The translations under genes were made by a program, and so were the position numbers. Below the pieces are notes generated by a model. That model saw only the letters and a program-made list of their open reading frames with translations, was not told the origin of the DNA and made no database searches. Of a DNA stretch of 25,548 nucleotides, positions 6,001-23,524 are shown in pieces; position 1 is the stretch's first letter; each line of letters begins with the position of its first letter. This DNA comes from Cyanophora paradoxa CCMP329 (lineage: Eukaryota > Plantae > Glaucophyta). Where the stretch lies: NCBI GenBank assembly GCA_004431415.1, contig QPMI01000376.1:1-25548 (forward strand). Reading direction: 5' to 3'.

Positions 6001-6872
6001 TGGGTCATCTTCCTAAGGCTAGCGCCTTGTGCATATTCCCCCAGAGAGATTTGAAGTGCATCTTTCTTCTATTTTGTGGCAGATGAGAAACCTGGGCCTT
6101 TGACTGAGTGACTTGCTGGTGGGTGGGTCATCTGCCTAAGGCTAGCGCCTTGTGCATATTCCCCCAGAGAGATTTTGGGTGCATCTTTCTTCTATTTTGT
6201 GGCAGATGAGAAACCTGCGGCCTCTGACTGGGTGACTTGCTGGTGGGTGGGTCATCTTCCTAAGGCTAGCGCCTTGTGCATATTCCCCCAGAGAGATTTT
6301 GGGTGCATCTTTCTTCTATTTTGTGGCAGATGAGAAACCTGGGGCCTTCGACTGGGTGACTTGCTGGTGGGTGGGTCATCTTCCTAAGGCTAGCGCCTTG
6401 GGCATATTCCCCCAGAGAGATTTGGGGTGCATCTTTCTTCTATTTTGTGGCAGATGAGAAACCTGCGGCCTCCGACTGGGTGACTTGCTGATGGGTGGGT
6501 CACCTGCCTAAGGCTAGCGCCTTCTGCATATTCCCCCAGAGAGATTTGGGGTGCATCTTTCTTCTTTTTTGTGGCAGATGAGAAACCTGCGGCCTCCGAC
6601 TGGGTGACTTGCTGGTGGGTGGGTCATCTTCCCAAGGCTAGCGCCTTGTGCATATTCCCCCAGAGAGATTTGGGTGCATCTTTCTTCTATTTTGTGGCAG
6701 ATTGGAAACCTGGGGCCTTTGACTGAGTGACTTGCTGGTGGGTGGGTCATCTGCCTAAGGCTAGCGCCTGATGCATATCCCCCCAGAGAGATTTGGGGTG
6801 CATCTTTCTTCTATTTTCTGGCAGATGAGAAACCTGGGGCCTTTGACTGAGTGACTTGCTGGTGGGTGGGTC
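1..6872 (+). repeat. 124-bp tandem satellite array, about 55 monomers, runs off the left edge
   Basis: AAGGCTAGCGCCTT recurs at e.g. 2071, 2195 and 2319 (period 124). Consensus: aaggctagcgccttgtgcatattcccccagagagatttggggtgcatctttcttctattttgtggcagatgagaaacctgcggcctccgactgggtgacttgctggtgggtgggtcatctgcct. The many short ORFs here are translations of the repeat. Confidence 0.98.
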
Positions 6873-7262
6873 TGTCTTCAAAATGAAAGGCTTGCTAAAA
6901 TTAGGGAGTGCCAGAATAGGCGCTGAACACAAAATCTCCTTCAATTTTCGAAATGCAAGGTCCTCCTTGGGACCCCGATAAAAATGTGTGCCTTTGGAGC
7001 ACAAATCATGCAAAGGTGCCGCAATCAAGGCACAACTCATGATAAAAATTCTATAATATCCTACCATACCTAAGAAAGTACGAACTTCTGATACAGATCG
7101 TGGAGTCGAGAACTTCCGAACTGCCTCCACTTTAGCCTCAGAGGGCTTGATTCCTTTCCTAGTAACTGTAAATCCTAAATATTCCAGTTCGGCCTTGAAA
7201 AACTTCGATTTCTTGGGCTTGAAGAACAAATTAGCCCTCCTCATGGCATCAAAGACCCACTG
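6873..7262 (-). pseudogene. Isolated gypsy pol fragment (RT C-terminus/connection to start of RNase H), paralogous to about 7748-8136
   Basis: Encodes WVFDAMRRANLFFKPKK...FSKPFILKTD, nearly the same protein as the neighbouring pol but with many synonymous changes. It reads straight into satellite at 6872. Confidence 0.9.
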
Positions 7263-10200
7263 CGTCCAAAAATGCGGATAAAGCGGGCGAAGTCACCTCC
7301 ATCGCCTCTAGAGATTGAACGGTCGTCCGCACAAGTCTGGACAGAGCGTCGGCATCGGCATTTGCCTTGCCAGGCTTGTACTCCAAATCAAAATCAAATT
7401 CTTGCATTCCCAAAATCCATCGAGTAATTCTAGCATTCGGCAAATTCTTGGCCGATTTCAAATATTGAAGAGCTGAGTGATCAGACTTGATCACAAACTT
7501 CTTGCCACGGAGATAGTGGGGGAACTTCTTGGTTACAGCCCACCAGATCGCATACAACTCCAGCTCCGTGACAGTCCATTTTTGCTGCTCTTCAGTAAGT
7601 GGTTCAGCTGCATACTCAATAACAATTTCTCGACTCCAATTCTTCTCCGCAGATGTAAACTTGTGGGAGGCAAAAGAAACAAACTTTTCATTTCCATCCT
7701 TATCCAATTGAGAAAGCACCGCCCCTACTCCAACTTTTGAGGCGTCGGTCTTCAAAATGAAAGGCTTGCTGAAGTCAGGAAGTGCCAAAATAGGCGCTGA
7801 ACACAACAACTCTTTAAGTCTCCGAAATGCCAAATCTTCTCGAGGACCCCAATAAAAGGGAGATCCTTTGGAGCACAAATCATGTAAAGGAGCTGCAATC
7901 AATGCACAGCTCATGATGAAAATTCGATAATATCCTACCATACCTAGAAAAGTGCGAACTTCTGATACAGATTTTGGTGTGGGAAATTTCCTAACCGCTT
8001 CTACTTTTGCTGGAGAAGGCTTGATTCCAGTCCTAGTAACTGTAAAGCCGAGATATTCCAGTTCTGCCTTGAAGAATTTTGACTTCTTGGGCTTAAAGAA
8101 CAAGTTAGCCCGTCTCATAGCATCAAATACCCACTGAAGATCAGCAAGATGCTGCTTCAGGGATTTCGAAAAGACACATATATCATCAAGGTAGACCAGA
8201 ACAAAAATATATAAATAAGTCCCTAATACTGAATTCATCATAGTTTGAAAAGTCGCCGGGGCTGTCTTCAATCCTTGGGGCATCACATTCCATTCAAACA
8301 ATCCAAGAGGAGTCCTGAAAGCAGTCTTCTCCTTGTCCTCCTCCTTCATCTCAACACCCCAATAACCATCCGGCGCGTCCATAGCTGATATATATATAGA
8401 ACCTGATAAAGCTTCCAGAGCATCGTCAATTCTAGGGAGCGGATAGGCATCATCCATAGTAACAGCATTTAATTTTCGATAATCAATACAGAATCGCAAA
8501 GTTCCATCCTTTTTGCGCACCAAGACCACAGGGGCGGCCCAGGGCGACCGAGAAGGACGAATTAAATTGCGACCCAATAACTTCTTGGTCTCATTAACAA
8601 TTAAATCACGCTCCTGCTGAGAATGTCTGCGAGGGGGCTCAGCGATCGGACGAGCATCTCCAGTTTGAATAGTATGCTTGATAGGCAAGTGTTGTCCATC
8701 AGGATCATAAGGCGGTAGCTCAGCCTTGGCACGATCCAAATTCCCAGCAAGGAAATCCAGCATAACAGTGCGCTCGTCAGCCTTGTCCTCAGGGCTGCCG
8801 ATATCAACACTCTTAAGAAAATCCAAGATGTTTTGTCCATACCGCTGGCGAATCTCATCATAAATAAGCTCTGAAGCATTTTCGACTGGAACTGTATGTA
8901 GATGTGAAAACTCTTTCATTCTATCTGTAAATGGATATTTGCACTCGGGAAGTCCATCAGAGAACTCAGACTTTTTGGAATCGAAATTCGCATCAACAGG
9001 CGAAGATTGAGGTCTAGCTTCTGGACTAGCTTCTTTCTTCGACTTGTCAGTAGAATTCAACTTGGCATCGGTCAAGTTGACTTGGATTGAGTCTGCACAG
9101 GCGTACTCAGAGACATATGTTGGTACCGAAGGGGGAACTTCTTTTGGTTCCACTTCCTTCACATACTCTCCTTTTCCCTCCTGATCATAACTCAATTTAA
9201 TTCCAAGGTCATACAATTCAGCTTTGAAGCGGGAATCAGGAACAAAAGTAGCAAGCTTCAAGCCTTTATGCAAAAGAACTGGTTTCTCCCCAAAGCGACT
9301 GCTCAAGTTAGAAACCATTCCATGAACTCGACCTCCACGGCACGCCGTCGGCCCAGCCGCTACACGGACCTCTGGGTTGCCGTCCCATTTGTAGAACTCT
9401 TTCAGAAAACCATCACAATCCGGCACATAGTGATTGCCACGGACTCTAATCTCTACCATCCGCTGAACTCCAGGCTCAATTTTAGCATCCTTGGCAACTT
9501 CCAAGACAAATCCATGATCTTCAGGAATTCTGCGAATGCTGGAACTCTCCGAAGGAATATTGTCTTGAGCATCTTGCGAAGATGATGGCTGCTCTGATGC
9601 GCCGCCCAGCACAGGAAGAACCTTGCACTGAACTGGCTTGTCCGGAAATCGGGCAAAAGTCAAAGTCCGATCCGTAGGGCCAACATTCGCATAAGCGACT
9701 CCATTCTCGGTGAAGAAGTCCTGACCCAAAATGCCGTCAAGAGCATAGCCAGGAAAATCCACTACAAGCAACGGAAAACTCTTGGTGAGCGGCCCAATTG
9801 TGGCCGATAAGCTGATCTCACCAGGTACAGACACCAATGCTGAATTAGGCAACTTAACAGATGGAGTGAAATGGTTGCGAAACACTTTGTGATTAAGTCC
9901 AAGTTGGGAAACAGTTTTAGAGAGGATAAAAGAAACATCTGCCCCGCTGTCCAATAAGAAAGAGTGAGGCTTTCCTTGGATGATAACTTCCACAATCGAT
10001 CTCCCTGGAGCCTGCGCGAATCGCCGCTCAGCTGGAGCATTATTGTAGGAGTCCAAGGAACATATTTGAAGTGAAGCACGGCCATCATTGTTGAAACTAA
10101 TTCCAAGTGATACAATTTTTCGATGTCTTTCGAGCGGAATGAAATGCTTGCGCGAGTGCGAATGCTCGCGAAGTCTCGAAGTAGCCGAAATGAAAGTGCC

Positions 10201-10608
10201 AAAGTGGCCTCTCTCGAACTGTCCAAAACTTTTTGAAACAAGCACCTCACGGGGAGAATCCCCCTTTTCACTCGAAATTTGTTGATCAAAACTACGCAAA
10301 TGCGGCTGACCATCCGGCGAATTGTCCGGAATTGTACCAAGAGAATCAATTCTACAACTACTAGCATCTTTCTTGTCATTGGCAACGATAGGGAAGTTGG
10401 AAGTTTGGGAACAATTGGATGATGAAATAGAAGCGGAAGAAGGGATATCAGAACAACCGTCGACTCGTTTTCCAATTCGTCTAAGAAATTCATTGAATGA
10501 AATCAAAGGAATCAAATTACGAAGTCCAAGAACAGCTGCTCCGAAAGTGGCTGGTTTAGACGCCGCCCCAGCCCGGCGGGCAGAAACAGGCTGGTTTAGG
10601 CGTTTTTC
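7249..10608 (-). CDS. pol: Pol polyprotein (aspartic protease, reverse transcriptase, RNase H), entered by -1 frameshift from gag and truncated before integrase
   Basis: The 1088-aa ORF stays open upstream to the slippery site at 10608. Protease FLLDSGAD (about 9941-9960) and GILGQDF; RT YLDD (8182-8193); RNase H TDAS...ELE...SDH...ADALSR. The last few codons and the stop come from the adjoining fragment. Confidence 0.93.
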   Translation of the reverse strand, partial: EKRLNQPVSARRAGAASKPATFGAAVLGLRNLIPLISFNEFLRRIGKRVDGCSDIPSSASISSSNCSQTSNFPIVANDKKDASSCRIDSLGTIPDNSPDGQPHLRSFDQQISSEKGDSPREVLVSKSFGQFERGHFGTFISATSRLREHSHSRKHFIPLERHRKIVSLGISFNNDGRASLQICSLDSYNNAPAERRFAQAPGRSIVEVIIQGKPHSFLLDSGADVSFILSKTVSQLGLNHKVFRNHFTPSVKLPNSALVSVPGEISLSATIGPLTKSFPLLVVDFPGYALDGILGQDFFTENGVAYANVGPTDRTLTFARFPDKPVQCKVLPVLGGASEQPSSSQDAQDNIPSESSSIRRIPEDHGFVLEVAKDAKIEPGVQRMVEIRVRGNHYVPDCDGFLKEFYKWDGNPEVRVAAGPTACRGGRVHGMVSNLSSRFGEKPVLLHKGLKLATFVPDSRFKAELYDLGIKLSYDQEGKGEYVKEVEPKEVPPSVPTYVSEYACADSIQVNLTDAKLNSTDKSKKEASPEARPQSSPVDANFDSKKSEFSDGLPECKYPFTDRMKEFSHLHTVPVENASELIYDEIRQRYGQNILDFLKSVDIGSPEDKADERTVMLDFLAGNLDRAKAELPPYDPDGQHLPIKHTIQTGDARPIAEPPRRHSQQERDLIVNETKKLLGRNLIRPSRSPWAAPVVLVRKKDGTLRFCIDYRKLNAVTMDDAYPLPRIDDALEALSGSIYISAMDAPDGYWGVEMKEEDKEKTAFRTPLGLFEWNVMPQGLKTAPATFQTMMNSVLGTYLYIFVLVYLDDICVFSKSLKQHLADLQWVFDAMRRANLFFKPKKSKFFKAELEYLGFTVTRTGIKPSPAKVEAVRKFPTPKSVSEVRTFLGMVGYYRIFIMSCALIAAPLHDLCSKGSPFYWGPREDLAFRRLKELLCSAPILALPDFSKPFILKTDASKVGVGAVLSQLDKDGNEKFVSFASHKFTSAEKNWSREIVIEYAAEPLTEEQQKWTVTELELYAIWWAVTKKFPHYLRGKKFVIKSDHSALQYLKSAKNLPNARITRWILGMQEFDFDLEYKPGKANADADALSRLVRTTVQSLEAMEVTSPALSAFLDAVGL
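10558..10608 (-). promoter_or_regulatory. -1 programmed ribosomal frameshift signal (G_AAA_AAC, 7-nt spacer, CCAGCC/GGCTGG stem, possible pseudoknot)
   Basis: The heptamer lies one codon before the gag stop and pol is in the -1 frame. The same layout with canonical G_GGA_AAA occurs at 16601-16607 and 19453-19459. Confidence 0.8.
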
Positions 10609-11745
10609 GGGCGGGGCTGCGAACCGCCCCGACCCTTAGGGTCAGAAGAAGACCCACGGCGCTCAACGGAGCGACCGCGATCGCCACCACCAGAGTAATG
10701 TCCAGAATCATGAGAATCGCGCTGGGTATAGTGCCCACGACCGCGACCTCCATATCCTCCACGTCCAAAGTTATAATTGCCACGCCAAGAGTCACCCTGG
10801 GGGCGAGAACTGACTTGGCGCCCAATCTGATCCAACTTTTCAAGAACTGCATTATTTGTGCGCTTAATTTCAGAGCGCAAATCATCAATCTTCTCATCTA
10901 CTTTCAATCCAAAACTCTTCAATTTCTCATCCATCAAATACTCTTCTTCAGACTTGGTCATGAGGGAAGAGGAAGAACCAGAGCCACGCTCTGTAGTAAG
11001 AGATGTGAAACCCAGGTCTCCCTTGGAGTGAGAGCCCGCTGCAGAATCCTGCAATTTCTTCTCCCACAACTGTTTGAGTCTGAAATATAATTTTTGCTTA
11101 TTATTGATTTCCACAGGCAAATCTCCAGGCAAATTCAATTCATTCCAAATATCCTTCATAACTACATCCTCAGTCAAATCTCGCCAAAAACGCGCCAAAA
11201 TTGAGGCAAGCAAACTGATAAGTGAAGTTCCAATACAACTTATTCGTCTGGCTTCGCACGGCATTGTGCAAGAAATGAGCAGTGAACCTTGCAACAAAAT
11301 CCGGCCAGTCAGCAGACTGCAGGACCTCTGGGCAGAAATCCTGAGCTGGACCAGTCGAAAAACAATTAGAGATTTTCATGCGAAGCTGAGTCCAAATATA
11401 ATCATGATTGGTCTGAGTCTGGGCGACCCATGTGTTGACGGCCAACTCATCATTTGCATTGGGAATGATGTCCACCGAAATCAAAAGTCTACGAAGCTGA
11501 GACAGAAAACGATTCGGTGCATTCGAATCAAAAATAACTAAATTGCTGGTCTTAATGAACGCTTTGAGAACGTCCTGATGGGGCTGAGGTGCACCCATTT
11601 CTTCAGAATCAATCTCGACAGAGATCCGGTCTTCCTCGTCTAAGTCGGCCAGTGCTTCGAGCACAACCCGACGAAGCAATTCCGGAAGGAACGAGTCTAT
11701 TACGACATCACATACGGCAGAATCACGACGGGTGAAACGATCCAC
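10596..11745 (-). CDS. gag: Gag-like protein split over two frames (11745-11170, then the +1 frame to 10596); coiled-coil and RG/RGG-rich C-terminus, no CCHC knuckle seen
   Basis: Lies between PBS and pol, is conserved with synonymous changes in copies 2 and 3, and ends in a GRGGYGGRGRG tail. The assignment is positional; no capsid motif was recognised. Confidence 0.75.
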
Positions 11746-11893
11746 TTTTTTTTTTTCACTGCGTTACACGCAATGCACGTACGCAGCAACAGGAACACAA
11801 GAAGGACACCGATACATCGGCATTCCGCCGGAAAACGCCAGAAAAATAAAGAAATTCCGGAATCCACAAAGATCCACAGAACGCGTGTTAAAA

Positions 11894-11911
11894 TCCGCGG
11901 TATTGGCCCCA
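11894..11911 (-). promoter_or_regulatory. Putative primer-binding site TGGGGCCAATACCGCGGA
   Basis: Starts with TGG 3 nt after the LTR-terminal CA. The equivalent TGGGGCCCATACGG follows the LTR in copies 2 and 3. The cognate tRNA is not established. Confidence 0.6.
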
Positions 11912-11914
11912 AAA

Positions 11915-12060
11915 TGTCCCGTAGTACACTATGGGTTCACACGCTGATGTACCAGGACAAGTTCCTGGACACCACACTGTATTTCCACCCAACACACCAA
12001 CTGAGGGGCAAGCCCCTACACATCAGGCTAATCTCGGGTACATCAGGGGGTACTATGACA
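11915..12060 (-). repeat. Putative short (about 146 bp) 5' LTR
   Basis: On the minus strand it reads TGTCATAGTAC...GTACTACGGGACA (TG...CA with an imperfect terminal inverted repeat). 11915-12016 is almost identical in copies 2 and 3 while the adjacent leader diverges. There is no second full LTR to confirm the outer boundary. Confidence 0.6.
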
Positions 12061-12092
12061 CACTTACTTAGGCGAACTACGCTTCAGCTCAG

Positions 12093-12361
12093 GCATATTC
12101 CCACAGAGAGATTTGGGGTGCATGTTTCTTCTTTTTTCTGGCAGATTGGAAACCTGGGGCATTTGACTGAGTGACTTGCGGGTGGGTGGGTCATCTGCCT
12201 AAGGCTAGAACCTTGTGCATATTCCCACAGAGAGATTTGGGGTCCACGAGATCGTTGAACAGCTCCAGTCTAACGGTGAGGCACCAGGTCTCCCATCCGC
12301 TACAAAAAAGAAGAAAGATGCACCTTAAATCTCTCTGGGGGAATATGCACAAGGCGCTAGG
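12093..12361. repeat. Satellite remnants in opposite orientations (forward 12093-12243, reverse about 12284-12361) around a 40-bp unrelated spacer
   Basis: Direct match to the 124-bp consensus and its reverse complement. Confidence 0.85.
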
Positions 12362-12608
12362 CACACAAAAACTTTTCAGGGGGAACATTCACAAAATCTC
12401 CGAGTCTTTCGCTACCCAATTTTTTAAGCGCTCTTGGGATACGCATCTGTAGGTGGGGGAGTGTATTCATTTCAAGTGTCTAGTTTGGGTTTTGGCTCCC
12501 GCTCACACGGGTCCCCAGCTGCACAAACAAACGGACAGGGAGTCCACTCACTGCACCCCAAATCTAGCCGAGGGGCGCTGCCCACTGATAGGTTCGGGTG
12601 CGCAGAGC

Positions 12609-13514
12609 ATGGATTTGTCGGCCAAAAAAGTTGCTGTTTGCATTTTTCTGATTCTTGTAATTGATTTCTTCACGATCACTTCCTTTTTCTGTAGCCCCAA
12701 TTCGGTTCAATATGTTGAACCGATCCCGGTGAAGCTGCGCGATTTGCCTGACAAAATTACAGACATGGAGCCACTCGTTTCTTTTACGGGCCCCCGCAAG
12801 TCTACAGTTGAACAGAAGTGTTTGCTCGCAGTTCCGATCGGAAGAAAGCAGGTGCACGTAGTCGATAAAATGGTTAACAGATTTTTGCAAAGCGCATGTT
12901 CTGTTCTTCTTTTTCAATACGACAACTCATCTGGATGGCATGATTACTCTTGGTATTCTCGTGTCTGGCACGTCAGAGGACCTGCACAGATGAAGTGGTG
13001 GTATATGAAACGGTTTTTGACTCCGGAAGCTGTTGGACGATTTACGTACATTTTCCCTTGGGACGATGATCAGGATATTCACGATTTTAATGTCTCCGCT
13101 TTCCTAGAAATTCTGGTTTCACACAACGTTTCTATCGCACAACCTAGTTTTACAGCAGGGAGTGGAGATCATCCTGTTACTTTTCAACAAAGTGAACATG
13201 GAAAGGATGGAAGGTGGACGGATTTCGTAGAGTGCGGGACATCACCAGTGTTCTCGGGCGATGTTTGGAGTCGTTGCATATGGCCTTTTCTCCAGGACGA
13301 TTTGACATCAGGATGGGGCTATGACCTTCTTTGGCACAATATGTGTGGATATGGCACAACAGCTGTCATAGACAAGTTCAGGGTCACTCATCTTCGAAAC
13401 AGGCATGCATCTTCTAATCCCTCATACAATGCTGGCTTGGAATTGGAAACCCTTTTCAAACGCTTTCCAACAGTTAAAAGAAGTCAAAAAATCACATTGG
13501 GATTTCTTGACTAG
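12609..13514 (+). CDS. DUF707-like type II membrane protein, putative GT-A glycosyltransferase (301 aa, intronless)
   Basis: ATG at 12609 is followed by a hydrophobic anchor (VAVCIFLILVIDFFTITSFF). The motifs LLAVPIG, LFQYD, KWWYMKRFLTP, YIFPWDDD (DxD), IAQP, FVE..PVFS..W.C.W...QDDL..GWGYD match my recollection of plant/algal DUF707 proteins. Confidence 0.82.
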   Translation: MDLSAKKVAVCIFLILVIDFFTITSFFCSPNSVQYVEPIPVKLRDLPDKITDMEPLVSFTGPRKSTVEQKCLLAVPIGRKQVHVVDKMVNRFLQSACSVLLFQYDNSSGWHDYSWYSRVWHVRGPAQMKWWYMKRFLTPEAVGRFTYIFPWDDDQDIHDFNVSAFLEILVSHNVSIAQPSFTAGSGDHPVTFQQSEHGKDGRWTDFVECGTSPVFSGDVWSRCIWPFLQDDLTSGWGYDLLWHNMCGYGTTAVIDKFRVTHLRNRHASSNPSYNAGLELETLFKRFPTVKRSQKITLGFLD

Positions 13515-13632
13515 GTCTTCTTTTGAGTGTGTGTATTCCGAAGAACACAAGGTTTCTTGCGCTCCTGAACACAGCGGGCAGGGAGCGCTGGGAGCCCAAG
13601 AGTGCTTTCGAGAATCCCAGCCCACAACAGGA

Positions 13633-14036
13633 GTCAGGTGCACACTAAAACTCTCCAGGAGGGAAGTGCACAAGGCGCTAGCCTTAGGCAGGTGCACCCT
13701 GCCCAGCAGAGGCCCTGTAAGAGGATCAGCCATTCCGAATGGGATGAATGTTAAGGGATTCGAACATTTCCTGGGTTCACTCCCTCTCCATCCTGCCCAC
13801 AGCAGGAAGTCAGGTGCACACAAAAAAGCCCTAGCCTTAGGCAGGGCCCAACGGGAATTCAAACTGACCAGGGCTAAGAAGTTGTGAACCCAGGAAACAT
13901 TCAAGTCCCCAAACACTCGGTGGGGGTCCCACTTGGAAGGGCAGAGCCTCTTAGAGGGCCTCTGCTGGGCAAGGTGCACCTGCCTAAGGCTAGCGACTTG
14001 TGCATGTTATCCCTGGAAAGTGTTTGTGTGCCTGAA
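13633..14036. repeat. About 90-bp imperfect inverted repeats (13633-13722 and 13947-14036) built on the satellite core; MITE-like or fold-back structure
   Basis: gtgcacaaggcgctagccttaggcaggtgcaccctgcccagcagaggccctgtaagagg pairs with cctcttagagggcctctgctgggcaaggtgcacctgcctaaggctagcgacttgtgca. A third partial copy lies at about 13808-13845. Confidence 0.8.
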
Positions 14037-16607
14037 CTTTGCTGTCACACGGCTTGATTCCTTCTCAGCAAACAACAAATCCAAGGCACTCAGCTTCAGC
14101 CTTGAAGAAACGACACTTGCGTGCTTTCAACCGCAGGTGAGCAGCAATCAGCTGATCAAAAACCCATTCAAGATATTCGAAATGCTCCTTCAGACTCCTG
14201 GAAACGACACTTATATCATCAAGATAGACAAGAATAAAGATGTAAAGGTACGCTCCTAACACTCCATTCATCAACATCTGAAATGTCGCAGGGGCCGTTT
14301 TGAGGCCCTGCGGCATGACATTCCACTCATACAAACCAAATGGTGTCCTAAAAGCTGTCTTCGGCCGATCCTTATCACTCAACTTGACATTCCAATATCC
14401 ATCATCACAATCTGCAACAGAAATATATATGGATCCAGAAAGAGCTTCAAGAGCATCATCAATTCTTGGTAAGGGATATGCATCATCCTTGCTAACACTG
14501 TTGAGCCTTCTGTAATCAATGCAGAAACGAAATGAGCCATCCTTCTTCCGCACAAGGACCACTGGAGCGGCCCAAGGGCTTCTAGAAGGACAAATTAAAT
14601 TCCTGTCGATCAGCTTTTGAGTCTCGTGAACGATCTTTTGGCGCTGGTCAAAAGAAAGAGGTCTGGGAGGCTCAGCAATCGGCTTTGCATCTCCAGTGTC
14701 AATGCTATGCTCAATAGGAGGACCAGGTCTGGACTCATCATGTTTCCATTGACCCTCCGCAAATACTTCATGCTTCCTCGCCAAGAAATCCCACATAAGC
14801 TTCCTCTCATCAAGATTATCATCAGCTGAACCAACACTGCATGGAGAGATGAGGCTTGCAACATTATCACCAAATCGCTCCCGAATCTCCTTCAGAATCA
14901 GTTCATCAGCCGAAGATACTTTTACAGAACTTGCTTGCGAAAATACAGAACTCTTTTTATCACTATCTACGGAAGTCGAGTTATTTACAACAGAATTCGA
15001 AACTTGTTGAGTTGAATCATCAAAAGAAGACTGGAGAACAGCTTGGGACGCAGTGACATCTACTGAATCAGGACCTTTGTACTCAGAACTGTGCACAAAA
15101 CTTCCTTTCCCAGATGAGTCATAACTCAGCACCAGGTTGACATCACAGATTTCCGGCATGTTGCGGACAACTGATGTTTTACTCTTGCTTGGAACAAACC
15201 TGGCTAGCCGGGTACCTTCAGGTATTACTGCCGGTCCCCTGTCAGACCTTGGATCAAGATTGACAAGCAATACCTTAATACGTCCTCCACGACAATGAGC
15301 TGGGCCACCTGCCACATGGACAAACTCATTTTCGTTCCATTCTCTAAAGTCATCAATAAAGCCTTCGCGATCCTGCACATAGCAGCAGCTGGGTGCTCTC
15401 ATCTAAACAAATCTCTGAGTTCCAGGATCAAGCTTGACCTTCTCAGCAGTCTCCATAATCACACCATATTCTTCAGAACACTCATCAGAATTGAGAGATG
15501 ATTCATCAGGGCGTGGTTGAGGAGAATCTGGCAAGGATCCATGCTGCTGATCTGATCCAAAAGTAATAGAAGCAATCTTGCACTCTACTGGCTGATCTGG
15601 GAACGTCGAGAATGTGATGGAGCGCCTGTTCACCTGTTCATTTTTATATGTCACTCCAAATTCAGACAAGAAATCTTGTCCAAGAATTATGGCATATGGA
15701 TAATTGAGAAAAGGGAAAGGGAAAGGAAAACAAGGAAAGGGAAAGATACTGTCAAAGGACCGATTGACCCTCTAATCAGAATCTCGCCAGGTACATTAAC
15801 AAGATGTGAATTAGGCAGGCGAACACAAGGCGTGAATGAGGTCTTAATTACCTGATTTTGCAGTTTCGAACTCTGCACTAGTGTACTCGTGACCAGTGAA
15901 ATATCAGCCCCACTGTCCAGCAAGAACAACTTGATGCCCTTGCTGACAACTTCGACCAACGATCTCCCAGGTGGAGTGACAGCAAACTGTCTCCGTGCTG
16001 GAGAGTTCTCTCTAGGAGACTGGGAGTTGTCAGAGGGACTTTTTGAGGTCATGAAGCGACGCGGCCCTGCGAATGTATGCTCAGCAGGAGAGCTCTGGGA
16101 GTCCAGAGAACAAATTTCAATTGAGGCTCGGCCATTATCATCAAAAGACAACTTCAGGGAAACCGGCTTCGAATTGTTTGCAGATGATATAAAATGCTTT
16201 TTAGCAGGGGCATCTCGCTTCCATTGCAGATCATCAGAAAAGAAATTCGAAAACGACTTCTGTTCCAATTTTCCACGATTTCCACTAACTACGACTACTC
16301 TACTAGCACTTCTCTGGGATCATGGATAATGGATAATAGCACTACTAAGCAACCTCATAGATAATGGGATCATTCTCTTGAAGGGTAACATCGGGACCAG
16401 AAGAAAGATAAGAAATAGAAGAAGATTAGAAGCATCCAAGAAAGGGAAAGGGAAAGCGCGAGCGACCGACAACGACTGCCGCTTCAAGAACTCGTTGAGA
16501 GTAATGATAGGCAACAACGATCGCAGTCCATTCGCTGCGCCGGAAATGGCTGGTTTCTAGGCCGCCCCAGCCTGGCGGGCAACAACAGGCTGGGTTAGGC
16601 TTTTCCC
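14030..16607 (-). pseudogene. pol: pol pseudogene (PR and RT) of a second, diverged family
   Basis: FLLDSGAD, SPWAAPVVLVRKKDG and YLDD are present. In-frame stops at 16558-16560, 15403 and 14065, with further disruptions near 15690-15740 and 16270-16440. Homology (EGIKPCDSKV) continues to about 14030. Confidence 0.9.
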
Positions 16608-18466
16608 GCCGGGCGGGGCTGCGAACCGCCCCGACCCTTAGGGTCAGCCGACGACCCACGGCGCTCAGCAGAGCGACCGCGATAACCACAAGAAGAATTT
16701 CCAAAATTGCGAGAATCATTTCCAGAATTACCAAATTTGTCATTCGAACGATTGCGATCAAAATTATAAGATCCACGAGGCTGGTCACGCCAGCTATCAC
16801 CGCGAGGGCGATACTGCAACTGACGAGACAACTGCTCCATGCGATCCAAAATAATAGACGAAGTGCGACGAGAATCATCGCGCAACTCATCAAACTGTTG
16901 GCGAGCTTCGTGCCGAATTTCGCTCAATTGGCGGCGAGTTTCGTCACGAAGTGAATCAAGCTTATCATCCACCTTCAAAGAGAACTGTTTGAGCTTCGAT
17001 TCGACCCGCTCATCAATCAAAGATTCAATAAGCTCCGAAGTGAGAGCGTTCAATCCAGAAACATTTTTCGGTGATTCAAAAGGAAGAGAAGTAATTCCAA
17101 AAGGAGAAACCGAAGAAAAAGAGGAAGTGCGATCGGTCCAGAGACTGCGCAGCCGACGCAAAAAGCGAAGTTTGTTGTCGTCCAATTCAGCCAGCAGCTC
17201 ACCCAACTTCAGGTCATCACTCCAAATTTGTTTCACCACAACTTTCTCAAGAATGCCAGCTTCCTCCGCTCGCTTCATCTTCTCCACAGCAAAGTCCTCA
17301 AAATTGACTTCAGTGCCAGCCTGGAGACAAGCACTCTGGTATGTGTAGGACCAGAAATTGCGAGCAGAAGAAGACCCGCGGCGCTCAACGGAGCGACCGC
17401 GATCACCACCACCAGAATAATGTCCAGAATCATGAGAATCGCGCTGGGTATAGTGCCCACAACCGCGACCTCCATATCCTGCACGTCCAAAATTATAATT
17501 GCCACGCCAAGAGTCACCCTGGGGGCGAGAACTGACTTGGCGCCCAATCTGATCCAACTTTTCAAGAACTGCATTATTTGTGCGCTTAATTTCAGAGCGC
17601 AAATCATCAATCTTCTCATCTACTTTCAATCCAAAACTCTTCAATTTCTCATCCATCAAATACTCTTCTTCAGACTTGGTCATGAGGGAAGAGGAAGAAC
17701 CAGAGCCACGCTCTGTAGTAAGAGATGTGAAACCCAGGTCTCCCTTGGAGTGAGAGCCCGCTGCAGAATCCTGCAATTTCTTCTCCCACAACTGTTTGAG
17801 TCTGAAATATAATTTTTGCTTATTATTGATTTCCACAGGCAAATCTCCAGGCAAATTCAATTCATTCCAAATATCCTTCATAACTACATCCTCAGTCAAA
17901 TCTCGCCAAAAACGCGCCAAAATTGAGGCAAGCAAACTGATAGGTGTAGTTCCAATACAACTTATTTGTCTGGCTTCGCACTGCATTGTGCAAGAAATGG
18001 GCAGAAAATCTTGCAACAAAATCCGGCCAGTCAGCAGACTGCAGGACCTCTGGGCAGAAATCCTGAGCTGGACCAGTCGAAAAACAATTAGAGATTTTCA
18101 TGCGACGCTGAGTCCAAATATAATCATGATTGGCCTGAGTATGGGCGACCCAAGTGTTAACGGCCAACTGATCATTAGCATTGGGAATGATGTCCACAGA
18201 AATCAAAAGTCTACGAAGTTGGGAAAGGAAACGATTTGGTTCATTTCAATCAAAATGACTAAATTGCTGGTCTTAATGAACGCCTTAAGGACGTCCTGGT
18301 TAGGCGGTGGAGCACCCGTTTCTTCAAAATCAAGTTCTACTAATGCAAGGTCTTCGTCGTCGGGGTCGGCCAGTGCTTCGAGCACAATCCGACGAAGCAA
18401 GTCCGGAAGGATAGAGTCAATTACGGTATCATAAAGGGCAAAATCCCGACGGGTGTAACGATCCAC
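16595..18466 (-). pseudogene. gag: Chimeric gag with duplicated C-terminal half, disrupted near 18250
   Basis: 18466-17365 is homologous to copy-1 gag. 17364-16595 is a diverged paralog of the same C-half (WSYTYQSACL vs WNYTYQFACL; RPRGDSWR vs RPQGDSWR). Confidence 0.8.
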
Positions 18467-18562
18467 TTTTTCACTGTGCTACACGCGACGCAGACACGCA
18501 ACCACAGAGACACAGTCAGAACACCAGGAAAAAAACACCAGAAAAAAATGATTTTCCAAAAA

Positions 18563-18684
18563 TCCACCGTATGGGCCCCAAATGTCCCGTAGTACACTAT
18601 GGGTTCACACGCTGATGAACCAGGACAAGTTCCTGGACACCACACTGTATTTACACCCAACACACCAACTGAGGGGCAAGCCCC
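18563..18684 (-). repeat. PBS and 5'-truncated LTR of copy 2
   Basis: 18583-18684 is near-identical to 11915-12016, and the similarity ends at AAGCCCC where telomeric repeats begin. Confidence 0.7.
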
Positions 18685-18838
18685 CCTAGCCCAAACCCTA
18701 ACCCTAACCCTAACCCAAACCCTAACTCTAATCCTAACCCTGAGTCTAAGCCTAATAATAACCCTAAGCCTTACCCTAACCCTAACCCTAACCCTAACCC
18801 TAACCCTAACTCTGAGCCTCATACTAACCCTAACCTAA
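18684..18838 (-). repeat. Interstitial telomeric tract, (CCCTAA)n on the plus strand = (TTAGGG)n on the minus strand, about 26 units, partly degenerate
   Basis: Runs of ccctaa with variants such as cccaaa, ctctaa, ccctga and gcctaa. Confidence 0.95.
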
Positions 18839-19070
18839 TATGCACAAGGCGCTAGCCTTAGGCAGACAAACCCACCCACCAGCAAGTCAATCAGTCAAAG
18901 GCCCCAGGTTTCTGATCTTCCACAAAAAAGACAGATGCATCCCAAATCTCTCTAGGGGAATTGGCACAAGGCGCTAGCCTTAGGCAGATGCCCCATCCAC
19001 CAGCAAGTCACTCATTTGAAGGCTGGAAGTTTGGGATCTGCCACAAAAAAGACAGATGCATCCCAAATCT
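18837..19070 (-). repeat. About 2 satellite monomers in reverse orientation
   Basis: Reverse complement of the 124-bp consensus; matches about 21688-21920. Confidence 0.9.
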
Positions 19071-21537
19071 TCCATTGCAGATCATCAGAAAAGAAATTCG
19101 AAAACGACTTCTGTTCCAATTTTCCACGATTTCCACTAACTACGACTACTCTACTAGCACTTCTCTGGGATCATGGATAATGGATAATAGCACTACTAAG
19201 CAACCTCATAGATAATGGGATCATTCTCTTGAAGGGTAACATCGGGACCAGAAGAAAGATAAGAAATAGAAGAAGATTGAGAAGCATCCAAGAAAGGGAA
19301 AGGGAAAGCGCGAGCGACCGACAACGACTGCCGCTTCAAGAACTCGTTGAGAGTAATGATAGGCAACAACGATCGCAGTCCATTCGCTGCGCCGGAAATG
19401 GCTGGTTTCTAGGCCGCCCCAGCCTGGCGGGCAACAACAGGCTGGGTTAGGCTTTTCCCGCCGGGCGGGGCTGCGAACCGCCCCGACCCTTAGGGTCAGC
19501 CGACGACCCACGGCGCTCAGCAGAGCGACCGCGATAACCACCAGAAGAATTTCCAAAATTGCGAGAATCATTTCCAGAATTACCAAATTTGTCATTCGAA
19601 CGATTGCGATCAAAATTTTAAGATCCACGAGACTGGTCACGCCAGCTATCACCGCGAGGGCGATACTGCAACTGGCGAGACAATTGATCCATGCGATCCA
19701 AAATAATAGAAGAAGTGCGACGAGAGTCATCGCGCAACTCATCAAATTGCTGGCGAGCTTCGTGCCGAATCTCGCTCAATTGGCGGCGAGTTTCGTCACG
19801 AAGTGAATCAAGCTTATCATCCACCTTCAAAGAGAACTGTTTGAGCTTCGATTCGACCCGCTCATCAATCAAAGATTCAATAAGCTCCGAAGTGAGAGCG
19901 TTCAATCCAGAAACATTTTTCGGTGATTCAAAAGGAAGAGAAGTAATTCCAAAAGGAGAAACCGAAGAAAAAGAGGAAGTGCGATCGGTCCAGAGACTGC
20001 GCAGCCGACGCAAAAAGCGAAGTTTGTTGTCGTCCAATTCAGCCAGCAGCTCACCCAACTTCAGGTCATCACTCCAAATTTGTTTCACCACAACTTTCTC
20101 AAGAATGCCAGCTTCCTCCGCTCGCTTCATCTTCTCCACAGCAAAGTCCTCAAAATTGACTTCAGTGCCAGCCTGGAGACAAGCACTCTGGTATGTGTAG
20201 GACCAGAAATTGCGAGCAGAAGAAGACCCGCGGCGCTCAACGGAGCGACCGCGATCACCACCACCAGAATAATGTCCAGAATCATGAGAATCGCGCTGGT
20301 ATAGTGCCCACAACCGCGACCTCCATATCCTGCACGTCCAAAATTATAATTGCCACGCCAAGAGTCACCCTGGGGCGAGAACTGACTTGGCGCCCAATCT
20401 GATCCAACTTTTCAAGAACTGCATTATTTGTGCGCTTAATTTCAGAGCGCAAATCATCAATCTTCTCATCTACTTTCAATCCAAAACTCTTCAATTTCTC
20501 ATCCATCAAATACTCTTCTTCAGACTTGGTCATGAGGGAAGAGGAAGAACCAGAGCCACGCTCTGTAGTAAGAGATGTGAAACCCAGGTCTCCCTTGGAG
20601 TGAGAGCCCGCTGCAGAATCCTGCAATTTCTTCTCCCACAACTGTTTGAGTCTGAAATATAATTTTTGCTTATTATTGATTTCCACAGGCAAATCTCCAG
20701 GCAAATTCAATTCATTCCAAATATCCTTCATAACTACATCCTCAGTCAAATCTCGCCAAAAACGCGCCAAAATTGAGGCAAGCAAACTGATAGGTGTAGT
20801 TCCAGTACAACTTATTTGTCTGGCTTCGCACTGCATTGTGCAAGAAATGGGCAGAAAATCTTGCAACAAAATCCGGCCAGTCAGCAGACTGCAGGACCTC
20901 TGGGCAGAAATCCTGAGCTGGACCAGTCGAAAAACAATTAGAGATTTTCATGCGACGCTGAGTCCAAATATAATCATGATTGGCCTGAGTATGGGCGACC
21001 CAAGTGTTAACGGCCAACTGATCATTAGCATTGGGAATGATGTCCACAGAAATCAAAAGTCTACGAAGTTGGGAAAGGAAACGATTTGGTTCATTTCAAT
21101 CAAAAATGACTAAATTGCTGGTCTTAATGAACGCCTTAAGGACGTCCTGGTTAGGCGGTGGAGCACCCGTTTCTTCAAAATCAAGTTCTACTAATGCAAG
21201 GTCTTCGTCGTCGGGGTCGGCCAGTGCTTCGAGCACAATCCGACGAAGCAAGTCCGGAAGGATAGAGTCAATTACGGTATCATAAAGGGCAAAATCCCGA
21301 CGGGTGTAACGATCCACTTTTTCACTGTGCTACACGCGACGCAGACACGCAACCACAGAGACACAGCCAGAACACCAGGAAAAAAACACCAGAAAAAAAT
21401 GATTTTCCAAAAATCCACCGTATGGGCCCCAAATGTCCCGTAGTACACTATGGGTTCACACGCTGATGAACCAGGACAAGTTCCTGGACACCACACTGTA
21501 GTTACACCCAACACACCAACTGAGGGGCAAGCCCCCC
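19071..21537 (-). mobile_element. Gypsy-type copy 3 (partial LTR 21434-21535, PBS, chimeric gag pseudogene, 5' end of pol); duplicate of 16220-18686
   Basis: Near-identical to copy 2 at an offset of about 2851 bp, sharing the gag nonsense codon (21096) and the pol TAG. Confidence 0.92.
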
Positions 21538-21689
21538 TAGCCCAAACCCTAACCCTAACCCTAACCCAAACCCTAACTCTAATCCTAACCCTGAGTCTAA
21601 GCCTAATAATAACCCTAAGCCTTACCCTAACCCTAACCCTAACCCTAACCCTAACCCTAACTCTGAGCCTCATACTAACCCTAACCTAA
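21535..21689 (-). repeat. Second interstitial telomeric tract with the same variant pattern as 18684-18838
   Basis: Same ordered series of degenerate hexamers. Confidence 0.95.
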
Positions 21690-23524
21690 TATGCACAAGG
21701 CGCTAGCCTTAGGCAGACAAACCCACCCACCAGCAAGTCAATCAGTCAAAGGCCCCAGGTTTCTGATCTTCCACAAAAAAGACAGATGCATCCCAAATCT
21801 CTCTGGGGGAATATGCACAAGGCGCTAGCCTTAGGCAGATGCCCCATCCACCAGCAAGTCACTCAGTTGAAGGCTGGAAGTTTGGGATCTGCCACAAAAA
21901 AGACAGATGCATCCCAAATCTCTCTAGGGGAATATGCACAAGGCGCTATCCTTAGGCAGATGACCCACCCACCAGCAAGTAACTCATTCGAAGGCCCTAG
22001 GTTTCCAATCAGTCAGAAAATAGAAGAAAGATGCGCCCCAAATGTCTCTGGAGGAATATGCAAAAGGGGCTAGCCTGAGGCAGATGACCCACCCACCAGC
22101 AAGTCACTCAGTCAAATGCCCCAGGTTTCCGATCTGCCAGAAAAAAGAAGACAGATGCATCCCAAATCTCTCTAGGGGAATATGCACAAGGCGCTAGCCG
22201 TAGGCAGATGACCCACCCACCAGCAAGTCACTAAGTCGAAGGCCCCAGGTTTCCAATCTGCCAGAAAATAGAAGAAAGATGCACCCAAAAACTCTCTGGG
22301 GAAATATGCACAAGGCGCTAGCCTTAGGCAGATGACCCACCCACCAGAAAGTCACTCAGTTACAGGCTGGAGGTTTGGGATCTGCCACAAAAAAGACAGA
22401 TGCATCCCGAATCTCTCTAGGGGAATATGCACAAGGCACTTGCCTTAGGCAGATGACCCACCCACCAGCAAGTCACTCAGTTACAGGCTGGAGGTTTGGG
22501 ATCTGCCACCAAAAGACAGATGCATCCCAAATCTCTCTAGGGGAATATGCACAAGGCGCTGGCCTTAGGCAGATGACCCACCCACCAGCAAGTCACTCAG
22601 TTGAAGGCTGGAAGTTTGGGATCTGCCACAAAAAAGACAGATGCATCCCAAATCTCTCTAGGGGAATATGCACAAGGCGCTATCCTTAGGCAGATGACCC
22701 ACCCACCAGCAAGTAACTCATTCGAAGGCCCTAGGTTTCCAATCAGTCAGAAAATAGAAGAAAGATGCGCCCCAAATGTCTCTGGAGGAATATGCAAAAG
22801 GGGCTAGCCTGAGGCAGATGACCCACCCACCAGCAAGTCACTCAGTCAAATGCCCCAGGTTTCCGATCTGCTAGAAAAAAGAAGACAGATGCATCCCAAA
22901 TCTCTCTAGGGGAATATGCACAAGGCGCTAGCCTTAGGCAGATGACCCACCCACCAGCAAGTCACTAAGTCGAAGGCCCCAGGTTTCCAATCTGCCAGAA
23001 AATAGAAGAAAGATGCACCCAAAAACTCTCTGGGAAATATGCACAAGGCGCTAGCCTTAGGCAGATGACCCACCCACCAGCAAGTCACTCAGTTACAGGC
23101 TGGAGGTTTGGGATCTGCCACAAAAAGACAGATGCATCCCGAATCTCTCTAGGGGAATATGCACAAGGCACTTGCCTTAGGCAGATGACCCACCCACCAG
23201 CAAGTCACTCAGTTACAGGCTGGAGGTTTGGGATCTGCCACCAAAAGACAGATGCATCCCAAATCTCTCTAGGGGAATATGCACAAGGCGCTGGCCTTAG
23301 GCAGATGACCCACCCACCAGCAAGTCACTCATTCGAAGGCCCTGGGTTTCCAATCTGCCAGAAAATAGAAGAAAGATGCGCCCCAAATATCTCTTGAGGA
23401 ATATGCAAAAGAAGCTAGCCGTAGGCAGATGACCCACCCACCACCAAGTCACTCAATTACAGGCTGGAGGGTCGGGATCTGCCACAAAAAAGACAGATGC
23501 ATCCCAAATCTCTCTAGGGGAATA
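21688..23524 (-). repeat. Inverted satellite block, about 15 monomers, with a 734-bp six-monomer higher-order repeat
   Basis: Diagnostic variants (aggcgctatcc at 21941 and 22675; caaaaggggctagcctgagg) recur at an offset of 734. Includes shorter variant monomers of about 120-121 bp. Confidence 0.93.

Follow-up and report, generated by a model that had tools for sequence, protein, structure and literature searches.

The question raised by this locus is whether retroelement sequence that directly adjoins telomere-like repeats reflects a dedicated means of extending chromosome ends or a chance product of DNA repair. The DNA analysed (hereafter the window) comprises positions 1-25,548 of the forward strand of contig QPMI01000376.1 from Cyanophora paradoxa CCMP329 (assembly GCA_004431415.1). 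We believe that the locus is probably a rearrangement scar in satellite heterochromatin containing interstitial telomeric sequence (ITS), derived from a chromosome break that was healed and re-joined. Structures of this kind are known.

Layout of the window and its telomere-like tract

The retroelement region (6873-21689) sits amid inverted blocks of a 124-bp satellite, which TRF places at 1-6872 and 21688-25548 (Table 1). Every match to RT, RNase H or protease in this region lies on the minus strand, as an earlier note on this DNA had described for the retroelement pieces in general. Read on that strand, the order satellite, (TTAGGG)n, truncated LTR and gag occurs twice, again in agreement with the note. 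Unrelated joints crowd one 16 kb, including an A/B chimera, an A/A' joint, a tandem duplication and switches in satellite orientation. At one such switch (23524) the arms agree at only 86% whatever register is chosen, which ruled out a mirror-image artefact. The intact DUF707 ORF is a bystander host gene boxed in by the elements and separate from them; its atlas neighbours are DUF707 clusters.

Table 1. Features of the window, in order of position
Feature	Coordinates	Strand	Basis or remark
124-bp satellite array, forward, last monomer phase 115	1..6872	+	TRF 55.9 copies, 94% matches; monomer consensus alignment
RT-thumb/RNase H-start fragment, 393-bp, third variant (A')	6873..7262	-	Pfam RT_RNaseH_2 match
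Copy 1 pol ORF, 1088 aa: protease, ~400 aa unannotated linker, RT, RNase H	7249..10515	-	Pfam, translation
Copy 1 gag-position ORF, 233 aa: coiled-coil region and RG-rich tail	10596..11297	-	
Copy 1 short LTR-like region, then PBS-like TGGGGCCAATACCGCGG	11915..12092	-	TGTC...GACA if start = 12060
Satellite remnants: forward 12093-12243, reverse 12278-12360	12093..12360	.	
Intact DUF707 ORF, 353 aa	12453..13514	+	Pfam PF05212 at 4.6e-42
Inverted pair, very abundant repeat related to satellite core	13620..14031	.	Borders broken B-type RT
B-type piece: gag from ~N-terminal third, protease (LLDSGAD), linker, RT	14030..17374	-	RVT_1 5.8e-34
A-type 5' piece: truncated LTR (18559-18684), PBS-like site, 5' UTR, gag almost complete	17365..18683	-	
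Interstitial telomere-like tract	18684..18841	- (G-strand)	158 nt; 12/~26 units perfect TTAGGG
1.85 satellite monomers, phase 32 to 22, within duplicated unit	18837..19070	-	
Second duplication unit: B-type gag start, A-type gag, truncated LTR, tract, satellite	19069..21919	-	"Copy 3"
Divergent-subfamily satellite block, reverse orientation	21688..23525	-	TRF 85% matches; phases
Forward satellite past orientation switch between GGGGAATAT and ATTCCCC	23524..25548	+	

Copy numbers were gauged from public (Logan) contigs assembled from four sequencing runs on this organism, generated in different studies; contig depth reflects copy number only roughly, and rare variants are dropped from such contigs. 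The DUF707 ORF is represented by one contig with 0 differences in the four runs. By the same rough measure, the repeat at 13620-14031 reaches a summed contig depth of 10^3-10^4 times that of the flank. The summed depth of 18542-18712 is about 300 times flank, which is the sole hint that TTAGGG is a candidate for the working telomere repeat.

Degenerate (CCCTAA)n was detected at 18684-18835 and 21535-21686, and 16 matches to three perfect or near-perfect telomere units were found where 0 were expected. The tract has the same sequence in both units of the tandem duplication and is flanked on both sides by non-telomeric DNA, opening at GCATATT on the satellite side and closing at a CCCTA/TAGGG microhomology on the LTR side. 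Its decay far exceeds that of the adjoining LTR, which is about 5% from copy 1. Short, interstitial and more decayed than the LTR, the tract does not resemble a telomere still in use when the joint formed. The minus strand runs 5' to 3' from the satellite through the G-strand into the element, an arrangement typical of a former chromosome end beyond which material has been added, and the satellite at 21688-23525, read on this strand, leads into the tract as a former chromosome end would.

The same tract could be explained without any chromosome end if telomerase had inserted it while repairing a double-strand break at a pre-existing satellite/truncated-LTR joint, as has been described for short primate ITSs. 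Its size, ~26 units, fits the 2-25 copies quoted for short ITSs (PMC6410037), and both of its flanks are breakage-prone repeats. We nevertheless regard this route as quite improbable, given that the heavy decay and blocks of variant units look more proximal or subtelomeric than freshly inserted.

Composition and copy number of the retroelement pieces

The pol ORF of copy 1 carries Pfam matches to RVT_1 (2.9e-36), RT_RNaseH (1.4e-35) and Asp_protease_2 (1.4e-07), and it breaks about 25 aa past ADALSR, a motif of RNase H, at the point expected for the start of integrase. The description of copy 1 as ending after RNase H thus holds for this ORF, but the element sequence continues with the A' RT fragment, which abuts the satellite and is 82.7% identical to positions 7744-8136 of copy 1. 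The ORF in the gag position shares 95% amino-acid identity with the copy 2 ORF (tblastx). Retention of gag, as claimed in the note, is upheld by position but not by Pfam, which returned no gag match above threshold, and the label 'gag' is therefore positional only.

An LTR-like region of 113-127 nt is present in three places (11890-12016, 18559-18684 and 21410-21535) with 94-96% identity. In copy 1, the adjacent positions 12061-12092 are unique within the window, with a likeness to satellite that is not significant, and may be LTR or filler. The PBS, also said to be retained, is plausible by inspection only: the reverse complement of the PBS-like site resembles the T-arm and acceptor end of a tRNA. 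Repeat comparison of the window revealed neither a second LTR copy able to act as a 3' LTR nor a target-site duplication, and a tblastn search whose queries were 120 Ty3/gypsy pol proteins, for the most part integrase-bearing, located no integrase there, so the earlier statement that all three are absent from the window stands. The tblastn matches were confined to 6700-10099 and 13800-15299 and covered PR, RT and RH parts only.

The note had also counted three comparable copies truncated at three different 3' points, and this view has to be abandoned. By its sequence, 'copy 2' unites an A-type LTR and gag with a B-type gag, PR and RT in one chimera. Its A-type 5' piece matches copy 1 at 89% over 12016-10643 (blastn) and at 93.8% over 10643-11750, and the A-type gag is fused in frame with the B-type gag in a 474-aa ORF (16595-18019). 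The B-type pol shares 50% amino-acid identity with that of copy 1, and its RT is broken at about 14030. The end of 'copy 3' is a duplication boundary: positions 16218-19070 and 19069-21921 are 99.2% identical, forming a tandem duplication of 2851 bp with a 2-nt AG microhomology at 19069/19070. The two telomere-LTR junctions are consequently one duplicated event, as the note had recognized.

It is very unlikely that the satellite-tract-LTR order or the tandem duplication is absent from the genome and arose from repeats mis-joined in assembly. Such an error is invited by a short window that has satellite at both ends and consists of repeats nearly throughout, and 11 of the 22 sites that differ between the duplicated units fall within 230 nt (16690-16919), which could be polishing noise. 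However, short-read contigs of runs X1 and X2 independently carry the exact 32-nt tract end (18810-18841) joined to satellite, and the orientation switch at 23524 is no mirror-image fold-back. Furthermore, the 5' UTR contig beside the junction (18281-18603) recurs with 0-1 differences in four runs from different studies, at 1.74-1.88 times single-copy flank depth in each. This roughly twofold depth fits just the two tandem units.

Other members of the family are not joined to telomere repeats, as judged from four contigs of run X1 that read through the breakpoint. These diverge from the window at 18685 and resume the upstream LTR of the copy 1 kind, which they match at 24 of 30 positions (0 of 2000 shuffles score as high). 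Element contigs elsewhere in the stretch have roughly 4-8 times flank depth, again as a rough proxy. The closest database relatives of the pol sequences are standard Ty3/gypsy proteins, mostly with integrase, and in the RT tree the A and B sequences form a sister pair among such relatives. Depth, LTR read-through and relatives together point to ordinary, multi-copy, dispersed element families, of which the contig survey recovered no full-length member possessing integrase together with paired LTRs and a target-site duplication. Given that the intact pol ORF stops at the start of integrase and that most relatives carry this domain, integrase is absent here through breakage of the pieces and not through the design of the family.

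Origin of the junction

Compared with copy 1, the LTR at the junction lacks about 45-75 nt from its 5' end and meets the tract on 5 nt of CCCTA/TAGGG microhomology, CCCTA being common to the copy 1 LTR (GCCCCTACAC) and the telomere C-strand. Among the matches listed, no contig bridged the LTR-tract joint, and mapping reached 29 nt into the tract. Because the LTR is cut internally and the joint bears microhomology, the earlier proposal that the LTR was joined to telomere repeats independently of integrase is supported.

We favour a history in which a chromosome would have had an end at GCATATT in the 124-bp satellite, whether through breakage or as its natural terminus, and would have borne telomerase-made (TTAGGG)n. 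The end of this short and probably already variant-rich tract may then have joined an ordinary Ty3/gypsy element inside its LTR at the 5-nt match, through microhomology-mediated end joining or microhomology-primed copying, with no part played by integrase. Template switches guided by homology, or unequal exchanges between related copies, could have produced the same-orientation chains (A then B; copy 1 then the RT fragment), and the 2851-bp piece of satellite, tract, LTR and gag would have been tandemly duplicated via the 2-nt microhomology. The orientation and decay of the tract, the microhomology, the chimeras, the duplication and the normal LTR copies elsewhere are seen directly, and from these we infer the order of events and the repair pathway. 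With only one joint, this pathway is indistinguishable from cDNA capture.

Another route, which we judge unlikely, is that an eroded chromosome end or a double-strand break captured retroelement cDNA on a single occasion. Internally primed cDNA would run to the 5' end of the RNA (the start of R), and its 3' end would anneal to the telomeric G-overhang via TAGGG/CCCTA, an event akin to the capture of Ty1 cDNA at breaks and in yeast that lacks telomerase. The joined piece does lack the upstream 45-75 nt of the LTR (possibly U3) and begins where RNA could start, yet copy 1, the window's other chain, retains the upstream LTR away from the telomere tract. Passage from the G-strand into the sense strand and truncation on the 3' side fit internally primed run-off cDNA, and back-step chimeras (A then B, A then A') are a product of RT template switching between co-packaged RNAs; however, replication-based template switching on genomic copies accounts for the same features. 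Although the RT activity of Ty1 plays a part in chromosome-end structures when yeast has no telomerase (PMC4700185), the decayed tract argues against a working telomere at joining.

It is extremely unlikely that integrase-less gypsy derivatives are joined to the ends of chromosomes, time after time, through their 5' LTR, as in the telomere-associated LTR retroelement system that the note had proposed. The window does hold one joint of the proposed kind, in a single orientation and with no integrase, and the A-type gag and copy 1 pol ORFs are open, which indicates a young family. Nevertheless, there is one event only, its tract is interstitial and decayed, other LTR copies are found without telomere repeats, and junction-specific sequence is present in only about two copies. 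The LTR is cut at a microhomology rather than at a defined end, and integrase was lost by breakage of an otherwise standard pol. The polarity of the array, to which the note had given meaning, reduces to two independent choices of orientation and is not beyond chance, since neighbouring pieces were joined in register by homology.

Comparison with known systems

Telomere-specific retroelements such as HeT-A/TART/TAHRE of Drosophila, SART/TRAS of Bombyx, MoTeRs of Magnaporthe and Athena-type elements are non-LTR or Penelope-like; they attach by their 3' ends via target-primed reverse transcription, are found many times over at true termini, and are typically 5'-truncated (PMC4700185; PMC7367193). 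As in these systems, retroelement sequence at the present locus directly adjoins telomere repeats in one orientation. In contrast, there is here one joint, which involves the 5' side of an LTR element and is interstitial, and other copies are not telomere-joined. The yeast element Ty5 is likewise an LTR retrotransposon tied to telomere-proximal chromatin, but its integrase targets insertion by binding Sir4 and yields normal insertions with both LTRs (PMC4700185), whereas the joint described here is not an integrase product.

Yeast cDNA capture resembles the present locus in that truncated LTR-element sequence is joined to a DNA end independently of integrase, with chimeric products. Capture of LTR-retrotransposon cDNA at DNA breaks was reportedly observed by Moore and Haber in 1996 and by Teng et al. 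in 1996. Involvement of Ty1 at chromosome ends in telomerase-negative yeast was described by Maxwell et al. 2004, as summarised in PMC4700185. Those events were shown experimentally under repair or telomerase defects, whereas ours is a single fossil joint of putative cDNA origin.

Chromosome healing, in which a telomere is added de novo to a break, followed by end joining (as in a breakage-fusion-bridge history), shares with this locus the abrupt switch from satellite (GCATATT) to G-strand, with satellite 5'. The insert is also bracketed by satellite blocks that face each other, with another orientation switch at 23524, although healing is here a historical inference from one locus. Finally, mobile elements and satellite DNA are frequent neighbours of ITSs, which have been interpreted as rearrangement scars (PMC6410037). 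Like subtelomeric or heterochromatic ITSs, the present tract is short, internal, degenerate TTAGGG sequence with satellite and mobile-element flanks in a rearrangement-rich region; it differs from them in that its distal partner is an LTR truncated at a TAGGG microhomology, and in that the whole joint was then tandemly duplicated.

A telomere-like tract between satellite and LTR

A 158-nt tract of TTAGGG-like repeats, with its G-strand on the minus strand, lies between satellite and a truncated LTR at two places (18684-18841 and likewise 21535-21692). Consecutive three-unit telomere-repeat matches number 16, against none expected, and a perfect TTAGGG occurs in 12 of about 26 units (TRF, 76% matches). 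The tract has the features of an interstitial telomeric sequence (ITS): its telomere-type hexamers are degenerate, and the DNA that borders them, LTR at one end and satellite at the other, is non-telomeric.

In minus-strand reading, satellite sequence stops after GCATATT and passes directly into the G-strand repeats, and the far end of the tract joins an LTR whose upstream 45-75 nt are missing relative to that of copy 1, another element in the window. With satellite 5' of the G-strand, the former chromosome-internal side should be that of the satellite, and the element would have been added beyond the former end. The breakpoint between LTR and tract falls on CCCTA, a telomere C-strand sequence common to the copy 1 LTR (AAGCCCCTACAC) and the tract (AAGCCCCCCTAGCCC). 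A few common bases at the breakpoint, together with the loss of the LTR terminus, mark this as a microhomology-mediated joint. An integrase product would have a complete LTR end, and the LTR is cut inside here; the joint is therefore integrase-independent, as the earlier note on this DNA had proposed, and should derive either from the repair or replication machinery of the cell or from annealing of a cDNA end. The adjoining LTR differs by about 5% from copy 1, and the tract is far more decayed. This difference is suggestive of an LTR that met an already variant-rich remnant and not a working telomere, with the caveat that mutation may run faster in repeat tracts than in unique sequence. A less probable alternative is that telomerase inserted the tract at a pre-existing joint.

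The two telomere-LTR junctions represent one event, as had been recognised earlier: each lies in one unit of a tandem duplication of 2851 bp (16218-19070 and 19069-21921), the units being 99.2% identical with 22 differing positions by self-comparison, and the tract being identical in both. Half of the differences (11 of 22) cluster in 230 nt of an RG-rich gag region (16690-16919 versus 19542-19771), where element contig depth is also highest. This clustering suggests either polishing noise or a local gene conversion in which other copies were the donors.

Principal features of the locus, in window positions
Feature	Position	Strand	Remarks
124-bp satellite	1-6872		forward orientation
Copy 1 pol ORF	7249-10515	-	uninterrupted, 1088 aa; protease, ~400 residues without annotation, RT and RNase H in order
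DUF707 ORF	12453-13514	+	intact, 353 aa; Pfam 4.6e-42; between satellite remnants and element debris
Inverted repeat pair	13640-13744 / 13927-14031 (region 13592-14031)		84% complementary
Fused gag ORF	16595-18019; also 19447-20869 region	-	474 aa; A-type and B-type parts in frame
Degenerate (CCCTAA)n tracts	18684-18835 and 21535-21686
124-bp satellite	21688-23525		reverse orientation; more divergent subfamily
124-bp satellite	23524-25548		forward orientation again

Chains of broken gypsy pieces

Elements of the locus are assigned to Ty3/gypsy by RT affinity and by the order of the pol domains that copy 1 retains. The best database matches are Ty3/gypsy pol proteins (RVT_1, RT_RNaseH_2 and RT_RNaseH, mostly with rve), with identities reaching 48% in local alignments and 54% over the RT core. 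Two divergent families are represented, the A-type of copy 1 and a second family, the B-type. The RT was placed, as the earlier note had suggested, in a quick tree with no reference clade labels; there the A and B RT cores are sisters (SH-aLRT 100), and their long branch falls within the gypsy matches.

The copy 1 pol ORF ends about 25 residues past the RNase H motif ADALSR, at the point where integrase starts in relatives. Beyond this break lies a 393-bp piece spanning the RT thumb and the start of RNase H, 83% identical to positions 7744-8136 of copy 1, and then satellite; this piece is a fragment of a third element variant. Copy 1 also has an ORF at the gag position (without a family match), a long 5' UTR and a short LTR-like end; with a start near 12060, this end would read TGTC...GACA. 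A putative PBS (TGGGGCCAATACCGCGG) directly follows ...GGGACA(TTT), and its complement resembles, by our reading, a T-arm plus acceptor end. Between protease and RT, about 400 residues have no family match (about 8520-9700 and 14550-15850, minus strand), and here the A-type and B-type proteins are approximately 50% identical. A single clean, in-phase insertion of copy 1 and its appended fragment into the satellite was considered and rejected, the flanks standing at phases 115 and 16 of the 124-bp monomer. There is no target-site duplication at these flanks, and the 30 nt between the copy 1 LTR and clear satellite are no more satellite-like than shuffled sequence (1039 of 2000 shuffles reach the score).

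Copy 2 begins with a stretch (18684-17365, minus strand) that is 89-94% identical to the LTR, UTR and gag of copy 1. B-type sequence takes over at about 17374 and extends to about 14030, restarting inside gag and continuing through protease into RT; protein identity to copy 1 is 42-50% overall and 65% in the RT core. Copy 2 is a chimera of A-type and B-type pieces. The fused ORF that spans the switch consists of two homologous halves, each with a coiled-coil region and an RG-rich tail, and matches neither a gag nor a zinc-knuckle family. Copy 3 ends at the boundary of the tandem duplication, where element and satellite have AG in common, and its end is therefore no independent truncation.

The RT, RNase H and protease matches between the satellite blocks are all on the minus strand, as the earlier note had described. 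Its observation holds, but the polarised array of three 3'-truncated copies that it had envisaged reduces to two chains of broken pieces, copy 2 being chimeric and copy 3 a duplication unit. The pieces within each chain are aligned by homology, so that their common orientation counts as no more than two independent choices.

A single event in which element cDNA was captured at an eroded chromosome end would account for the back-step chimeras and, if the joint corresponds to the transcription start, for the missing upstream part of the LTR. Such a capture would recall the behaviour of Ty1 in yeast (PMC4700185), and we regard it as an unlikely, but not negligible, origin for the locus.

The reported absence of integrase, 3' LTR and target-site duplication was borne out in the window: tblastn with 120 Ty3/gypsy pol queries finds integrase nowhere, and self-comparison reveals no second LTR copy after any element, only 5' LTR pieces. 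The window pieces are fragments, and their lack of paired LTRs and of a target-site duplication is a feature of these copies that may not extend to the family. A search with the copy 1 pol protein returned only matches of at most 48% identity, a result that is uninformative on full-length members; similarly uninformative was the blank obtained with the 119-aa RNase H end as query, aimed at short contig-derived proteins reaching into integrase. The RT-RNase H region recovered related loci of at most 52% identity only, and a 32-nt LTR core had 0 matches in metagenome and viral contig collections.

Public contigs and the satellite setting

The stretch is present in 24 public runs of one organism, in all of them as assembled contigs, and four runs from different studies were compared over 12800-18712, which reaches 29 nt into the tract. 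In each of the four runs, one contig without any difference covers the flank of the DUF707 ORF, and for this reason the ORF looks like a conserved, probably single-copy, host-type gene stranded in heterochromatin. Exact database look-ups of the ORF, with either of its starts, gave no match. The depths of the flank contig (81, 100, 59 and 24) provide a rough single-copy yardstick, contig depth being no copy number. A contig adjoining the truncated LTR (18281-18603) is found in 4/4 runs with 0-1 differences at 1.74-1.88 times this yardstick, the level expected for the two tandem units alone. For the B-type RT and A-type gag, contig depth is about 4-8 times the yardstick, and these contigs show several differences from the window; both families therefore have further genomic copies.

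In one run (X1), four contigs depart from the window at 18685, and their consensus agrees with the copy 1 upstream LTR at 24 of 30 positions (0 of 2000 shuffles reach the score). In other copies, then, LTR sequence carries on past this point, with no telomere repeats attached. Contigs of X1 and of a second run (X2) contain all 32 nt of 18810-18841 without a difference and pass from there into satellite, so that independent samples confirm the junction of tract and satellite. For the LTR-tract joint itself the support is only indirect, with no bridging contig among those listed. Mis-assembly of the locus is unlikely, since independent contigs count against it.

These comparisons tell against the central proposal of the earlier note, a dedicated telomere-associated LTR retroelement system, which is the least supported of the readings. 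The window holds a single, duplicated event, and in the contigs of the four runs the other LTR copies pass normally through the breakpoint and the junction-specific sequence is present just about twice. The telomere-like repeats are decayed and in an interstitial position. Furthermore, integrase appears to be missing by breakage of an otherwise standard pol, because the ORF stops at the expected integrase start and database relatives mostly carry integrase.

The window ends in satellite on both sides. The satellite changes orientation at 23524 (GGGGAATAT followed by ATTCCCC), and has further joints at 12093 and 18837/21688. A fold-back read artefact was rejected as the source of the 23524 switch, the arms being just 86% alike in every register, without mirroring. 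GCATATT was likewise rejected as a hotspot of breakage: of about eight satellite joints, three lie at phase 16-22, and since we estimate that chance alone would give about 0.5 such triples, the excess is not significant. The repeat of the inverted pair has a summed contig depth 10^3-10^4 times that of the neighbouring gene and has a core (GCACAAGGCGCTAGCCTTAGGCAG) in common with the 124-bp satellite; it is against this repeat that the B-type RT breaks off. Neither the Rfam nor the tRNA scan of the region gave a match.

Origin of the locus and relation to known systems

The locus is most likely an ITS at a rearrangement scar in satellite heterochromatin. A break or end within the satellite would first have carried telomerase-made repeats, and the shortened tract would later have been joined, or primed, at microhomology onto ordinary gypsy element DNA. 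Homology-guided template switching or unequal exchange may have produced the chimeric chains, and tandem duplication of a 2.85-kb piece would have followed. The same 16 kb also contains satellite orientation switches, two inverted copies of a very abundant repeat and a boxed-in host-type gene. According to a review, ITSs frequently have mobile elements and satellite DNA at their flanks and are regarded as scars of chromosome rearrangement (PMC6410037); the locus is a further example of this known class of structure.

A more far-reaching proposal is that, in this organism, chromosome ends broken within satellite arrays and healed by telomerase are recurrently extended by integrase-independent addition of LTR-retroelement sequence, as cDNA or copied DNA, at TAGGG-like microhomologies, the locus being the fossil of one such extension that was internalised later. 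We consider this very improbable. The telomere-associated LTR system of the earlier note, were it real, would give the telomere retroelements of Drosophila or rotifers their first counterpart among LTR elements. Under the rearrangement-scar reading, the value of the locus is modest: in a genome of protist or alga-like kind, with satellites that gather broken elements and genes, it offers a well-resolved case of a microhomology joint between telomere tract and LTR, of retroelement chimeras and of a tandem duplication that came later. Given a chromosome-scale assembly, it may help to find former chromosome ends.

The known telomere-associated elements HeT-A/TART, SART/TRAS, MoTeRs and the Athena type are non-LTR or Penelope-like, occur in many copies at termini and attach by their 3' ends (PMC4700185). 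Ty5 reaches telomeric chromatin via its integrase (PMC4700185), unlike the joint described here. HeT-A/TART, SART/TRAS and the Athena type are characterised by many independent telomere insertions, whereas the contigs of four runs indicate one duplicated event at this locus. These systems also employ 3'-end target-primed reverse transcription with variable 5' truncation. In contrast, the pieces described here are truncated at their 3' side and are joined by their 5' LTR side, such that the G-strand runs into the sense strand of the element.
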